Part shown: positions 54,451 through 59,875 of the stretch, one piece after another
How positions within the stretch are numbered: position 1 is the first letter of the stretch
Layout of the letters: each line of letters opens with the position of its first letter
Assembly: GCA_024704765.1 (NCBI GenBank)
Contig: JAKMXF010000295.1
Location: 124,001 to 188,000, forward strand
Length of the DNA stretch: 64,000 nt
Source of the DNA: Oopsacas minuta
Taxonomy: Eukaryota > Animalia > Porifera
Direction: 5' to 3'
The notes under the pieces: model-generated
Database searches by the model: none
What the model saw: only the letters and a program-made list of their open reading frames with translations
What the model was told of the DNA's origin: nothing
Position numbers and translations under genes: made by a program

Positions 54451-56324
54451 AGGTAGATTTAGCTAAGTTTAAGTAATAAATACTTCCTAATAATTCAATT
54501 ATTATATTAGTACATGTAGTCATAATTAACTGATGCCTGAAGTATATTACCTAATTTATTTGTGCAACTAATTTCGGCAATTGGCTGCAACATATACATT
54601 AATAGTAGCCAAGTGAAACAAAAATATTTCGGATCTTTTATCGATAATTGTTATGAATTAAATACGATATAACTCCGATAAGACGTACCCCTCGGGGGGA
54701 AAATATAAGTATAAATAAACGAAGTACGTCTTATCCGAATCTTTTCTTATACAATTAGTACAAGAATTGATAATCTGTTCTAGATTATTAATTCTTGTAC
54801 CAATTGTACAAATAATAAAATTTCCATACAGTAGAAGTCATACTAACCGAGTTCTATTGTATGTGAATTTTATTATTTGTTAAACTAGTTAAATGCACAA
54901 AGCCAATCAGTATTGTGCGATATATAATAGGAAGAAGTTTAGAATGAGGAACCAGTAGTATAATTTTAAACTACACCTTTGTATCCATAAACTGGAATTA
55001 TTCCTAAATTGTATTATTAAAGGGATCTTGTACAAGTACGAGACATACTCTGAATAGGGAATCTAGAATCAGAACCTAAGGAATCTGTAGTTGATAATTT
55101 TACTTCATATATTACTTATATGTCAGTATTCATTTATTGGGTGGAATAATATTCAATGCCATGCTTAACGTATAATTAAGTAACAAATAAGAAATCTGAA
55201 TTTTCAACTGCGCTCATCTTAGTAACCAGTCTCGTATATTAGAATTTAACAATATTCAAATTTAGTAACAGTCATCGAATTAGTATTTTATACGGATTAC
55301 CGACAATTCGCACCTAATTTGATCGGTCAATTGATTCCGAATATGATTTTTAGCATTGTATGATCAGTTTTTGTTGTTATTTATGTACATAAAGTAAAGA
55401 AATTTCAAAAAGTTCGTATACTTTTAACGGCTACAGAGGTAATCGAGTGTTCGAATAGCATATCGTGAATATTCGACTTAGAGAGTGACTTTCAAAATAT
55501 ACATGGGATACTTATTAATACATAAGACAAATTACCGGTTGATTAGGAGTAACCTAGGCGCCCGAAAGGTGCCTATTAAGGACGCTTCGTGTCCGCAACC
55601 GCGTACTGCAAGGAAGAGTAGCTTACTTGTATATATTGAATTTTTGAACTATACAAGTAGTAAAGTATGGATTCCACAATCTGTGATCAAAGAATTTATC
55701 CATACATTTGAAGAAAATGTAAATAAAATCATTCCGGATTTATCATAATATAATTTGAAGCTGTTCTTCTATGGAAAATCTTTCTTATATTTCCCCACAT
55801 TGAGCTGACCTAACTCAAAATTGCCACTTAAATTCCTTTAATAACACGGTGGACTCCGCTTAATAGACCCACCGGTTAATTTGGCCAACACCTTTATCCA
55901 ATAAATATAGGTGATAATTTCATCTCTGGATGGGTACTGTTTCGGTTAAGTAAACTAGCCTTCCACTTTTAAATATTGGCCTTGCTGGGATAGATCGGAA
56001 TGATATCTGTAACAGATATTTTGTTCATTTAACTTATAATCATGATATTACGTAGGTCATGATTAAATGAACTTCATACCACCCTATCCTTAGAAGTACT
56101 TCTAAAGATAGGGTGGTATGAAGTCTAGTTATACCCCTACACAATTATCCTACAAAATACTGAATAAAAATAATATATATAATAGAGTCGTGTTGTAAAT
56201 AGTGTTGTAGGGGAAAGATCAAGAGAGGTGCAGCTACCGCATCATAACCACTGTCTTCTTCCATGGTAGCTGCACCTCAATGGAGATGATAGAGGAGAGG
56301 AGAAGAGTGGAGTGAGAAGAGAAA

Positions 56325-57663
56325 GAGATGTGACGCATTGGTTGTGTGAGCAAAGAGGGGTCTGCAAAGCTAGAGTTCATACCAAAGGGATGGTGATAGT
56401 CAAGCGCACGAATGAGCACTTCCATGGGCCTGACGAGCAGGCAGCGGGCTGTTGTGAAGCGAAGGCAGGCATGAAGAGGAAAGCACGAGAGTCCCAGGAT
56501 AGCACATACCACATAGTGGGCGAGAGTTTGCAAACAGCATCAGAGGGTACTGCTGCTAAACTCCCCAAACTGGACAGCCTGAAGCAGACGATACAACGCC
56601 AGCGTACTAGTGTACTTGCAGCTCCAGCACAGCCTACTCTAGCAGAGCTAGCTCTACCAGCAGTCTACCAGCAAACAGCCAAGGAAGAACAGTTCTTACT
56701 CTACGACTCTGGTGCAGACGATGTACACAGATTCCTCATCTTCGCGACGCAACACAACCTCGGGATGCTGCAGCGAAGCAAGATCCGGCTAGCTGATGCA
56801 CCTTCAAGACGGCACCTCCCTCTTCACCCAGGTGTGTGTGGTGCATGGACTCTGTGTAGGAGATGATCCTATGGAGACCGATCATCTGTTACCGAGCCTG
56901 TTCGTGCTACTACCCAACAAGACGGAGGCTGCCTTCCTGAGGATGTGGGAACAGATCCGCCTACTCTGTCCACTTGCCCAGCCTCAACAGATGCTCCTGG
57001 ACTTTGAAAAGGGCGCGATTACCAGCCTTGAGCCTAACACAGTAGTGAAGTGCTGCTTCTTCCACCTCACACAGAATATCTGGCGATATGTGCAGTCTAC
57101 CTACACACATGACGAAGAGTTGGCTATGCGCATCCGGAGAATACCAACCCTTGCTTTTGCCCGACCAGCAGACGTACCCGATCTGTTTGATCAAGTTGCA
57201 ATGGACCTCCCCCTACGCCTGAGGTAGGCGAACTAGTCGACTACTTTGAGAGGACGTATATCGGCCGCACAGGTGCCAGCGGATACCATGTAGCGGCGAC
57301 GTACCCTATTCACCTGTGGAACAACCACATCGGCACGCCCTTAGGACTCCCCTCGTACAACCAACACCGTAGAGGCATGGCACCGCAGCTTCAATGCCAC
57401 TGTCGACTGCCATCACCCTACCATATGGAAGTTTATCCTATCCCTCAAGCGTTAGTAGGGCCTAGAGGAGGTGCGGCATACTAACTACCTTGTTGGCAAA
57501 CCAGCAACCAAGCGGAGGCGGTCCCAACAGAATGAGGAAGAGTTGAAGACTCTAGTTCGTGAATATTATTCTCCAGATCGTTCTAAAATGGAATTCTTGC
57601 AGGGTGTAGTACATCATTTCAGTTTGGGAGCCGATTAACATGCTAATCAAAGCATTATTTCTA
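56325..57663 (+). repeat. Inverted copy (5'-truncated) of the MULE transposase, left arm of a ~2.7-kb palindrome
   Basis: Reverse complement of 57682-59018. The ORF track shows identical 143-aa, 77-aa and 63-aa products on opposite strands. Confidence 0.97.
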
Positions 57664-57706
57664 ATCAATGTATTTCAGGGCTAGATAATACTTTGATTAA
57701 CATGTT

Positions 57707-59127
57707 AATCGGCTCCCAAACTGAAATGATGTACTACACCCTGCAAGAATTCCATTTTAGAACGATCTGGAGAATAATATTCACGAACTAGAGTCTTCAA
57801 CTCTTCCTCATTCTGTTGGGACCGCCTCCGCTTGGTTGCTGGTTTGCCAACAAGGTAGTTAGTATGCCGCACCTCCACTAGGCCCTACTAACGCTTGAGG
57901 GATAGGATAAACTTCCATATGGTAGGGTGATGGCAGTCGACAGTGGCATTGAAGCTGCGGTGCCATGCCTCTACGGTGTTGGTTGTACGAGGGGAGTCCT
58001 AAGGGCGTGCCGATGTGGTTGTTCCACAGGTGAATAGGGTACGTCGCCGCTACATGGTATCCGCTGGCACCTGTGCGGCCGATATACGTCCTCTCAAAGT
58101 AGTCGACTAGTTCGCCTACCTCAGGCGTAGGGGGAGGTCCATTGCAACTTGATCAAACAGATCGGGTACGTCTGCTGGTCGGGCAAAAGCAAGGGTTGGT
58201 ATTCTCCGGATGCGCATAGCCAACTCTTCGTCATGTGTGTAGGTAGACTGCACATATCGCCAGATATTCTGTGTGAGGTGGAAGAAGCAGCACTTCACTA
58301 CTGTGTTAGGCTCAAGGCTGGTAATCGCGCCCTTTTCAAAGTCCAGGAGCATCTGTTGAGGCTGGGCAAGTGGACAGAGTAGGCGGATCTGTTCCCACAT
58401 CCTCAGGAAGGCAGCCTCCGTCTTGTTGGGTAGTAGCACGAACAGGCTCGGTAACAGATGATCGGTCTCCATAGGATCATCTCCTACACAGAGTCCATGC
58501 ACCACACACACCTGGGTGAAGAGGGAGGTGCCGTCTTGAAGGTGCATCAGCTAGCCGGATCTTGCTTCGCTGCAGCATCCCGAGGTTGTGTTGCGTCGCG
58601 AAGATGAGGAATCTGTGTACATCGTCTGCACCAGAGTCGTAGAGTAAGAACTGTTCTTCCTTGGCTGTTTGCTGGTAGACTGCTGGTAGAGCTAGCTCTG
58701 CTAGAGTAGGCTGTGCTGGAGCTGCAAGTACACTAGTACGCTGGCGTTGTATCGTCTGCTTCAGGCTGTCCAGTTTGGGGAGTTTAGCAGCAGTACCCTC
58801 TGATGCTGTTTGCAAACTCTCGCCCACTATGTGGTATGTGCTATCCTGGGACTCTCGTGCTTTCCTCTTCATGCCTGCCTTCGCTTCACAACAGCCCGCT
58901 GCCTGCTCGTCAGGCCCATGGAAGTGCTCATTCGTGCGCTTGACTATCACCATCCCTTTGGTATGAACTCTAGCTTTGCAGACCCCTCTTTGCTCACACA
59001 ACCAATGCGTCACATCTCCAATTCTCCTCTGCACTCCAAACATATATCCATTCTCAGGCAGCTTATCTCCTCCTCTTTGTGACTTGATCAGCCTAAAGGT
59101 CGGCTGATCAAGAGGCTCCGCCATCAA
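57707..59127 (-). pseudogene. FLYWCH + MULE transposase, full-length arm, frameshifted
   Basis: FRLIKSQRGGDKL...WLCEQRGVCKARV...EHFH, AD(G)TFKTAP, LLDFEKGAI, CCFFHLTQNIWR, DYFERTYIG, TNTVEAWH. Confidence 0.9.
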
Positions 59128-59875
59128 AGATTGTTAAATTTCAAAGACACATGTAATATGTAATATTGAGAAAACGAATCTGAGTTTGGACTGGATCATT
59201 TTCTATTTATGTCGAGGTTGCAAATATCACAGGTGATCATATCCTGTTTACTACATTCCTCTTACCAAGTATAGCCCTGAGAGCATTTACTTCGTGCGTG
59301 TTTACTTAATACTTATTATAGCAATCTTTGGAATTCATATCATTAAATGGATTCATGGAATCATGTCATCTATAATTAGAACTATCTATCCAATTATGAC
59401 TTTCCGTGTGCAGGTATAATTATTAGAAAATTGATAATTTATGTGTACTTAGATTAAATTTATTAACTAATCTCATAACAAATTGACCGATCAAATTGGG
59501 TGCGAAGTGTCGTGGTGCGAATTGTCGGTATCCGTTTTATACAGGTCCCAAATTAGTAAACACTGTTGTAATAAGAAATTGACAATCGTTTAAATTTAGT
59601 AACAACTCATTTTAGGAAGTTTCAACATGTCTCATCTTAGTCACTACCGTATTCTGAATTTTTCAATCTTTTGTCAAAAATAGAAAATGCATATTTCGCA
59701 AAATATATATATATAGCTACGCTTTTCTCACTTTTTTATTTTCCTTTCTCACTTTTCCAATTCTCCAACTTCCACTTTTTTTTCTCATGTTAAATAAATT
59801 TTAATGGCAACAGAAGAGTTTCAAATCTCTCCCTCACAAACACAAATCATAGCCCTCACTCTTCACAATCAATAG

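Follow-up and report, generated by a model that had tools for sequence, protein, structure and literature searches.

The element at positions 55294-59533 of the window, a 64,000-nucleotide stretch of the Oopsacas minuta genome, is best explained, with a probability of about 0.72, as a member of a fold-back subfamily, present in many copies, of a FLYWCH+MULE transposon of this sponge, in which the transposase gene was duplicated in inverted orientation once, spread with the element and had its two arms homogenised within each copy. The 4.24-kb element is bounded by terminal inverted repeats (TIRs) and carries its palindrome internally, with parts ordered as TIR, about 1 kb of non-coding sequence, an inverted partial transposase gene, a loop of 18-26 nt, the full transposase gene, its 5' region and TIR. 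The features are listed below in window coordinates; L numbers designate other loci.

55285-55293, no strand: left target-site duplication ATTTTATAC, with 8 of 9 bases equal to GTTTTATAC at 59534-59542
55294-55332, plus strand: left TIR, an inverted match to 59481-59533
55333-56324, no strand: non-coding left region of about 1 kb, belonging to the fold-back subfamily and collinear at 94-95% identity in L002, L003, L004 and L009
56325-57663, plus strand: secondary arm, the inverted partial transposase gene, running from codon ~38 to its stop (57636-57638) plus about 25 nt, delimited by repeat search and base-by-base comparison
57664-57681, no strand: palindrome loop (spacer), with homologous loops bearing copy-specific variants in L002-L005, L007 and L009
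57682-59018, minus strand: primary arm, the body of the transposase gene with the C-terminal part of FLYWCH, the MULE domain and the C-terminus (Pfam matches), stop at 57705-57707
59019-59124, minus strand: first ~36 transposase codons, outside the palindrome, with the ATG at 59124-59122 (in ORF 58477-59127)
59125-59480, minus strand: 5' untranslated or presumed promoter region, AT-rich (32% G+C) and collinear in other copies
59481-59533, minus strand: right TIR with a tandem 15-nt motif, an inverted match to the left TIR
59534-59542, no strand: right target-site duplication GTTTTATAC, pairing with ATTTTATAC at 8 of 9 bases

The original prediction described a near-perfect palindrome of about 1.34 kb with an 18-nt spacer, and base-by-base comparison agreed, the arms at 56325-57663 and 57682-59018 differing at three positions (57466/57877, A/T; 57643/57700, C/T; 57653/57690, C/T) and in the few bases closest to the loop. 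An inverted-repeat search returned arms of 1345 nt (56314-57658 and 57685-59029) that were 99% complementary and separated by 26 nt. The fold had been placed about 25 nt past the transposase stop codon, and the stop indeed lies ~20-25 nt from the inner arm end. Outside the palindrome are 1031 and 515 nt of unlike sequence, so that it stops short of the element ends. When the two sides were compared for traces of a palindrome that once spanned the whole element and has decayed in its outer part, they were unmatched apart from the TIRs and a weak, purine-rich likeness between the sequence left of the secondary arm and the first 36 codons. The left region has no homology with the right subterminal region past the TIR, nor with canonical relatives of the element, and contains a small palindrome with 34-nt arms (56064-56131). 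The TIR pair differs by one indel within the terminal 21 nt, and the terminal motif GGxATACCGACAATTCGCACC was found in every copy as well as in L010 and L012, which are canonical relatives. A single MULE with intact TIRs and target-site duplication had been correctly recognised as to the element and its TIRs, but its 9-bp duplication is not fully intact.

MULE/Mutator elements are recognised by a MULE (DDE) domain (PF10551), a 9-11-bp target duplication, TIRs and, in animals, a WRKY/FLYWCH-type N-terminal zinc finger. The family examined here has 9-bp target duplications, TIRs, a FLYWCH domain and, in relatives of the window copy, PF10551 above the Pfam cut-off. FLYWCH (PF04500, E 3.8e-11) is encoded by the right arm on the minus strand, its match beginning at residue 14 of ORF 58477-59127. 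The PF10551 match of the window copy is weak (E 9e-4, 20 bits, under the 27.6-bit cut-off) because its gene is broken, and the same domain scored 38.3 bits in P0122 from L009, a close relative within the fold-back family, and 45.9 bits in the canonical P0127. The primary arm contains frameshifts and in-frame stops, and seven indels relative to the family majority, frameshifts among them, are common to both arms, as had been claimed. The window copy is a decayed pseudogene incapable of moving by itself, and all sampled O. minuta copies have broken open reading frames, the longest of 450 aa.

The same fold-back is present at seven of the nine O. minuta loci examined, the window counted (six of the eight others), all taken from one assembly and sampled via N-terminal protein matches, by which a canonical copy in the genome may have been missed. 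Four loci (L002, L003, L004 and L009) are collinear with the entire window element at ~90-92% identity, centre and outer junctions included, and L005 and L007 carry partial versions. The outer junction, where the arm start at about codon 38 meets the left region, is identical in the window, L002, L004 and L005. The copies diverge by 3-11% and have unrelated flanks, and 9-bp target duplications were found at three loci (window, 8/9; L003, CTTTTCCAA, 9/9; L009, ATTGTACAG, 9/9); those of L002 and L004 were looked for and not found. Shared junctions at different insertion sites, together with the target duplications, indicate that the fold-back architecture was inherited and transposed. In short-read k-mer contigs, word depth was hundreds to thousands within the element versus ~35 in its flanks, and exceeded 100,000 over the arms in X1. 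Metagenome contigs searched for the loop sequence gave no match.

The proteins closest to those of the window element are O. minuta gene models, and the element shares its contig with LOD99_3958 and LOD99_3959. In the O. minuta gene set the two arms of such elements appear as different proteins, labelled "hypothetical" or "FLYWCH", a practical warning for its use.

It is extremely improbable that the window holds a unique inverted-duplication allele of one decayed MULE copy, acting as a single-locus silencer in the manner of maize Mu killer. The nearly identical arms and their common frameshifts would suit such an allele, but the same junctions lie at six other loci and are multi-copy in the reads, and these loci are unlikely to be assembly duplicates since their flanks and target duplications differ. 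The decay also postdates the spread of the fold-back, because the majority reading of the arms over copies is nearly open, being interrupted only at one alignment column where many copies have an extra base. The proposed likeness to Mu killer stands as regards a MULE transposase gene duplicated in inverted orientation within a TIR element, and falls as regards a single self-made allele, given its presence at seven of nine loci.

The assembly is a hybrid one, built in SPAdes from Illumina reads and Canu-corrected PacBio CLR reads and then polished with Pilon (PMC10280926). From such CLR reads and SPAdes, a spurious second arm could arise through palindromic PacBio reads with a missed SMRTbell adapter or through the de Bruijn graph, the loci really being single-arm MULEs; arms that are 99.5-100% alike in several copies, and contigs of L001 and L008 that stop at or near the palindrome centre, are what such an artefact might leave. 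The figure of 99.5-100% may itself be overstated, as de Bruijn bulge removal can erase sparse inter-arm differences. We nevertheless consider an artefact very improbable, since the same centre and outer junction recur at seven loci that are 3-11% diverged and have copy-specific loop variants, which random chimeras cannot produce, and since the arms of L002 retain a 3% difference. Read evidence was drawn from Logan k-mer contigs, comprising runs of one project and one other sample. Both element/flank junctions occurred there without difference and at single-copy depth (three public runs, one sample), the outer-left junction was bridged by a multi-copy contig of the second sample (X5 record 26, 56216-56361), and loop variants and the L005-type centre were also present; no single-arm joint 56324->57682 was reported. 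Recurrence of the junctions in diverged copies and in short-read contigs led us to reject a PacBio missed-adapter or amplification chimera, in agreement with the earlier view that the structure is real, and the described methods include no whole-genome amplification (PMC10280926).

Within a copy the arms are 96.8-99.9% identical, versus 89-97% between copies, and in a tree the two arms are sisters in all six two-arm copies (the window, L002, L003, L004, L007 and L009), with support of 100/100 or 100/99. Derived substitutions occur mostly in both arms rather than in one (both/one: window 42/2, L003 19/3, L004 25/1, L007 56/4), and copy-specific indels are likewise present in both. L005 has a symmetric deletion beside the loop, the junction of which (joint 57694->57850) is multi-copy in short-read k-mer contigs. 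With the primary arm as reference, both loop orientations were found, also in L002 and L009, which have distinguishable arms; where the arms are identical, the orientation of the loop is for that reason not settled by the assembler. A short stem, CTAAAG..CTTTAG, borders the loop in most copies. The likeness of arms within copies and the two loop orientations point to arm-to-arm recombination or gene conversion, and on this comparison of sequences the frameshifts common to both arms are copy-specific changes that spread to both, not relics of the duplication of a dead gene. The copy-specific changes present in both arms comprise 99 non-synonymous and 65 synonymous, against an expected 76.5% non-synonymous, a mild depletion that fits in-place conversion and homogenisation in a source lineage alike.

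Copy-specific mutations in both arms would also be expected if each diverged copy had been duplicated independently, by a site-specific template switch or hairpin-primed synthesis, primed at a short natural hairpin immediately past the stop codon, with arm identity reflecting the youth of the duplications instead of gene conversion. The stem bordering the loop is compatible with such recurrent folding, as is the ability of MULE transposase to form hairpins on flanking DNA when it cuts (PMC5499845). A mechanism local to the loop, however, leaves the shared outer breakpoint unexplained: in the window, L002, L004 and L005 alike, the arm adjoins the ~1-kb left region at this junction, the entire asymmetric element is collinear across copies of both clades, and a single-arm precursor with the left region was not seen among the sampled loci. 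We regard independent duplication as unlikely. The common junctions, the differing insertion sites and the 9-bp target duplications show a single origin of the inverted duplication, in a relative of the compact canonical MULEs of ~2 kb, and the later spread of the fold-back subfamily via transposition. Arms of one copy remain nearly identical while the copies drift apart, and are probably kept alike by inter-arm recombination or gene conversion, whether at the insertion itself or among the source elements from which the copies descend; the same process would flip the loop.

Related elements from further assemblies have a compact 2-kb MULE form and lack the fold-back. L010 is 2.0 kb long, with 196-nt TIRs and an intact 482-aa open reading frame, and neither it nor the canonical relative L012 has the fold-back; a long inverted repeat was also absent from L011. 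The TIRs of canonical relatives contain at least seven tandem 15-nt motifs, versus one or two in the window element. Between the two fold-back clades dN/dS was ~0.33 (Fisher p 1e-6 to 1e-9), which indicates that the transposase was under selection while the fold-back was carried, although this low value could instead result from conversion by unseen canonical autonomous copies and not from selection on the fold-back elements. It is conceivable, if rather doubtful, that the fold-back is a working design of an autonomous MULE lineage, in which the spare arm repairs the transposase by conversion and/or small RNAs from a 3' hairpin limit the element's own family. If true, this would explain the persistence of the subfamily under purifying selection and the displacement of the canonical 2-kb form in this sponge.

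Folding prediction for a read-through RNA gave a hairpin of ~1.33 kb (MFE -2978 kcal/mol) with 1333 of 1334 arm positions paired with their mirror position, and neither AATAAA nor ATTAAA occurs from the primary stop codon to position 55842, beyond the antisense arm. A transcript starting at the 5' end and passing through the loop into the antisense arm would thus be predicted to form ~1.33 kb of dsRNA, and a Dicer pathway, if present in the sponge, would process such dsRNA from many loci simultaneously into small RNAs specific to the family. Dicer, Argonaute and Piwi are not mentioned in the O. minuta genome paper, and a literature search gave no usable result. We tentatively entertain the possibility that the element is a functional hairpin silencer or self-regulator, its read-through RNA being diced to siRNAs or feeding piRNA production and repressing in trans as a dispersed Mu killer equivalent. 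The predicted intramolecular duplex, the missing polyadenylation motifs and the broken state of every sampled O. minuta copy agree with such a function, as does the silencing triggered in maize by inverted duplications of MuDR and Ac (PMC3440606; bioRxiv 10.1101/2020.01.07.897926). Amplification of the fold-back subfamily and purifying selection on its transposase would, on the other hand, be unexpected with efficient silencing, and the subfamily's success means that amplification went ahead despite any silencing of this kind. A silencing role is compatible with the structural explanation, to which it adds a function.

Mu killer (Muk) belongs to the same superfamily and is likewise an inverted duplication of part of the transposase gene, present here as 1.34-kb arms. 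Muk, however, is a single, non-mobile rearranged locus that is transcribed by read-through from a neighbouring gene and silences MuDR in trans, whereas the O. minuta fold-back is enclosed by two TIRs of working type, has transposed, occurs in many copies with differing flanks and target duplications, has its arms kept alike and has a predicted hairpin RNA. The maize Ac inverted duplications are also transposon inverted duplications, made by alternative transposition with the element's own machinery and giving hairpins and siRNAs (bioRxiv 10.1101/2020.01.07.897926), but each of them is a separate rearrangement of a chromosome, not part of a mobile subfamily, and they concern a hAT element, not a MULE, in a plant with RdDM. 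Mobility and long inverted repeats are shared with Galileo (P superfamily), Muta1 and Tm1 (MULE/Foldback). Within a single Galileo copy the two TIRs are 98-100% alike, duplicated and inverted internal segments can extend them, and long TIRs have been proposed to attract recombination and conversion (PMC3573991). The inverted repeats of these elements are terminal and non-coding, whereas the O. minuta palindrome is internal and covers nearly the whole transposase gene; the window element, with only ~40-55 nt inverted at its ends, lacks the long terminal inverted repeats, usually composed of subterminal tandem repeats, that define Foldback elements (FB/Galileo/Muta1), and has one or two copies of the 15-nt motif. 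Such repeats are found in L010 and L012, with TIRs that are Muta1-like and made of subterminal tandem repeats (PMC5499845).

Primate Y-chromosome palindromes are large and gene-bearing, with arms that evolve in concert and a spacer that can invert through inter-arm recombination. The O. minuta elements resemble them in their concerted arms and invertible spacer, and differ in that the Y palindromes are part of a chromosome, span tens of kb to Mb and do not move.

Transposon inverted duplications that form hairpins are known from Mu killer and the Ac rearrangements, as rare accidents at single loci by which a family is switched off, whereas in this early-branching animal a structure of the hairpin type is mobile, abundant and concerted within each copy. 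If the hairpins are not expressed, the subfamily would provide a compact model in which to study gene conversion within short palindromes, the inversion of their spacers and the effect of a palindrome on MULE transposition. If they are expressed, the sponge would harbor tens to hundreds of dispersed dsRNA sources directed against one transposon family, offering a natural system for the early animal interplay of RNA silencing and DNA transposons.

The element at 55294-59533 of the window is a FLYWCH and MULE transposon that carries an internal palindrome of its transposase gene, laid out as follows.

55294-55332, left terminal inverted repeat (TIR), inverted match to the right end
55333-56324, non-coding left region of about 1 kb
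56325-57663, secondary arm, inverted partial copy of the transposase gene
57664-57681, loop
57682-59018, minus strand, primary arm, transposase gene
59125-59480, 5' region, presumed promoter
59481-59533, right TIR, inverted match to the left end

A repeat search of the window recovered an inverted repeat of 1345 nt (56314-57658 and 57685-59029; 99% complementary), and base-by-base comparison of the arms 56325-57663 and 57682-59018 found three mismatches (57466/57877, 57643/57700 and 57653/57690) besides a few unlike bases at the loop-proximal ends, confirming the near-perfect palindrome of the original prediction. An ORF starting at 59124 on the minus strand runs on into the right arm, which encodes on that strand a FLYWCH zinc finger (PF04500, E 3.8e-11) and a weakly matching MULE transposase domain (PF10551, E 9e-4). 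The frame is interrupted several times and, as had been predicted, the breaks are identical in both arms. The G+C content is 52% in the arms versus 30-35% in the surrounding sequence. ATTTTATAC and GTTTTATAC border the element as a 9-bp target duplication in which one base is mismatched, so that of its predicted ends the TIRs stood but the duplication is not intact.

The near-perfect arms and the PacBio/SPAdes origin of the sequence raised the question whether the second arm is an artefact. For the assembly, SPAdes 3.9 was run on Canu-corrected PacBio CLR reads together with Illumina reads, and its output was passed through SSPACE, Pilon and GapFiller; no whole-genome amplification was involved (PMC10280926). 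Several observations argue against an artefact: both the centre and outer junction of the palindrome repeat in copies 3-11% apart that have copy-specific loop variants, the arms of one copy (L002) still differ by ~3%, and the structure is backed by k-mer contigs of public short-read runs (X1, X2 and X3 from one sample, X5 from a second; X2 and X3 were judged to be Illumina libraries from Nextera adapter remnants in loose ends). Both window element/flank junctions were present in these contigs at single-copy depth and without differences, the outer-left junction was found at multi-copy depth in the second sample (X5 record 26, 56216-56361), and the contigs also contained loop variants and the centre typical of another copy, L005 (57694->57850 joined through AGATTAAC, at depth 584). 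A joint of the single-arm kind, 56324->57682, did not appear among the k-mer contigs of the runs. In X2 and X3 the words of the element were hundreds to thousands deep, and in X1 those of the arms reached a depth of as much as 166,000, compared with ~35 in the flanks; the fold-back MULE family is clearly multi-copy. The prediction that the palindrome is real DNA is thus upheld by its recurrence in diverged copies and in short reads. Relative to the flanks and the rest of the element, summed arm depth in X1 was ~15-fold above that in X2 and X3 from the same sample, which could reflect a library effect or additional transposase-only copies.

Two features may still owe something to the assembly. 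Bulge removal fuses sparse differences between inverted arms and so could have distorted arm identity in its final percent, and wherever a copy has identical arms, the orientation given to the loop could be arbitrary. Contigs were also seen to end at or near the palindrome centre: L001, which opens contig JAKMXF010000177, is broken exactly there, a few bases from the stop codon, and in another assembly (ENA ERZ25072740) the contig of a relative, L008, ends ~120 nt ahead of the stop codon. Assemblers may break at the centre, so that fold-back copies would be under-counted. The O. minuta genome paper puts DNA transposons at 15.4% and does not mention fold-back MULEs (PMC10280926).

Eight further O. 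minuta loci were retrieved via protein matches. Four (L002, L003, L004 and L009) are collinear with the entire window element at ~90-92% identity, from left TIR, ~1-kb left region, secondary arm and loop to primary arm, 5' region and right TIR; L005 and L007 have the fold-back in partial form, and L006 is a truncated 5' half. The fold-back is present in seven of the nine loci, window included, and none of the nine was a single-arm copy with its 3' end intact. Flanking DNA is unrelated between fold-back copies, the 9-bp target duplication is perfect in L003 and in L009 (CTTTTCCAA and ATTGTACAG, respectively), and the outer junction, joining an arm start at about codon 38 to the left region, is common to the window, L002, L004 and L005. 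The inverted duplication therefore formed once and was then carried along within a moving element. The original interpretation holds for a real inverted transposase duplication in a TIR element, but the single Mu killer-like allele it proposed is contradicted by fold-backs in seven loci with unrelated flanks.

Individual copies had further peculiarities. The window copy and L003 share a small second palindrome without spacer in the left region (56064-56131; 34-nt arms, 88% complementary), where L002 and L004 depart from the window sequence; the majority of family reads jump 55 nt at it (joint 56075->56131). The right end of L003 (L003:9071-9124) is 15-16 nt shorter than usual, stopping at the inner copy of the 15-nt TIR motif despite the perfect target duplication, and may result from transposition using the inner repeat as an end or from a precise terminal deletion. 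L009 has a pogo/Tc5-like element (CENP-B_N, HTH_Tnp_Tc5, DDE_1) inserted in its left region (L009:10731-12746), equivalent to window position 55633. Separate protein-coding gene models lie on each arm in L002, L003, L004, L009 and the window (e.g. LOD99_5516/5517 and LOD99_7410/7412), bearing the names 'FLYWCH-type', 'General transcription factor II-I-like' or 'hypothetical', and represent pseudogene fragments of transposons. LOD99_3958 and LOD99_3959 are on the same contig as the window transposase protein.

Arm-arm substitution identity was 99.8% in the window, 99.6% in L003, 99.9% in L004, 99.5% in L007, 98.4% in L005 and 96.8% in L002, and identity between copies was 89-97% (substitutions). 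In a maximum likelihood tree of the arms of the window, L002, L003, L004, L007 and L009, both arms of each copy were sisters (support 100/100 or 100/99).

Derived substitutions in fold-back copies of O. minuta (copy: both arms; one arm)
Window: 42; 2
L003: 19; 3
L004: 25; 1
L007: 56; 4
L009: 13; 8
L005: 13; 5
L002: 19; 39

Copy-specific indels were mirrored in both arms (7 of 7 in the window, two or three each in L003, L004, L005 and L007), including a ~150-nt deletion adjoining the loop on both sides in L005. Relative to the primary arm, the loop has orientation A in the window, L003, L007 and L009 and orientation B in L002, L004 and L005, and is trustworthy in L009 (A) and L002 (B), whose arms are sufficiently different. 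Within-copy identity, sister arms, mirrored indels and two loop orientations indicate that the arms have probably undergone recombination and gene conversion, in place or in the source-element lineage. Read by majority over the copies, the arms have an open frame save for one column, where the extra base is still in many copies, so the frameshifts postdate the spread of the fold-back and would afterwards have been copied from arm to arm. Copy-specific changes in both arms (99 non-synonymous to 65 synonymous; 76.5% expected non-synonymous) are near neutral, which fits conversion in place and in the source lineage alike.

Between fold-back copies dN/dS was 0.28-0.69, and ~0.33 between the two clades (L005/L007 versus the rest), with non-synonymous changes significantly depleted (Fisher p 1e-6 to 1e-9). 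Within the divergent clade, L005 keeps the shared centre and outer junction, and the primary arm of L009 retains a 450-aa ORF. The simplest reading is that fold-back elements themselves encoded a functional transposase for a substantial time; alternatively, the low dN/dS could come from conversion by unseen canonical autonomous copies.

Relatives in ENA ERZ25072740, ERZ25071281 and ERZ25072730 are ordinary compact MULEs with 66-73% nucleotide identity. One (L010), 2.0 kb long, has 196-nt TIRs made up of tandem 15-nt units; its FLYWCH and MULE ORF of 482 aa is intact and stops ~55 nt before the 3' TIR. L012 is laid out alike and shares its terminus, GTCGGTATCC, with the sponge element. Neither L011 nor L012 contained a long inverted repeat. 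The fold-back, and the 1-kb left region in place of a short 3' end, are therefore derived and, in the loci sampled, confined to O. minuta. MULE transposase cutting leaves a hairpin on the flanking DNA (PMC5499845), and the inverted copy might have arisen from cleavage at a cryptic site immediately beyond the stop codon, or from a template switch during gap repair at a short stem beside the loop.

A transcript that starts at the 5' end and runs through both arms (2831 nt) is predicted to fold into an almost perfect 1.33-kb duplex (MFE -2978 kcal/mol), with 1333 of 1334 arm positions paired with their mirror position. Neither AATAAA nor ATTAAA occurs from the stop codon to 55842, past the antisense arm, so transcriptional read-through is plausible. 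Comparable MuDR and Ac inverted duplications set off heritable silencing in maize (PMC3440606; bioRxiv 10.1101/2020.01.07.897926), and a real small-RNA role is conceivable here, if rather unlikely. The subfamily's abundance and its history under selection speak against the hairpin having prevented its spread.

We consider a real, inherited fold-back architecture, with the full structural account, to have a probability of about 0.7, and we are more confident still that the fold-back is real and multi-copy. By domain, TIRs and 9-bp target duplications the element belongs to the MULEs. The window element resembles Mu killer structurally but, unlike it, is not a single non-mobile locus; it differs from classical Foldback elements in that its palindrome is internal and coding. 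Galileo, a Foldback-type element, likewise has within-copy identity of its inverted repeats, for which conversion was proposed (PMC3573991). What would be new in the O. minuta family is a transposase palindrome that is mobile, amplified and concertedly evolving.
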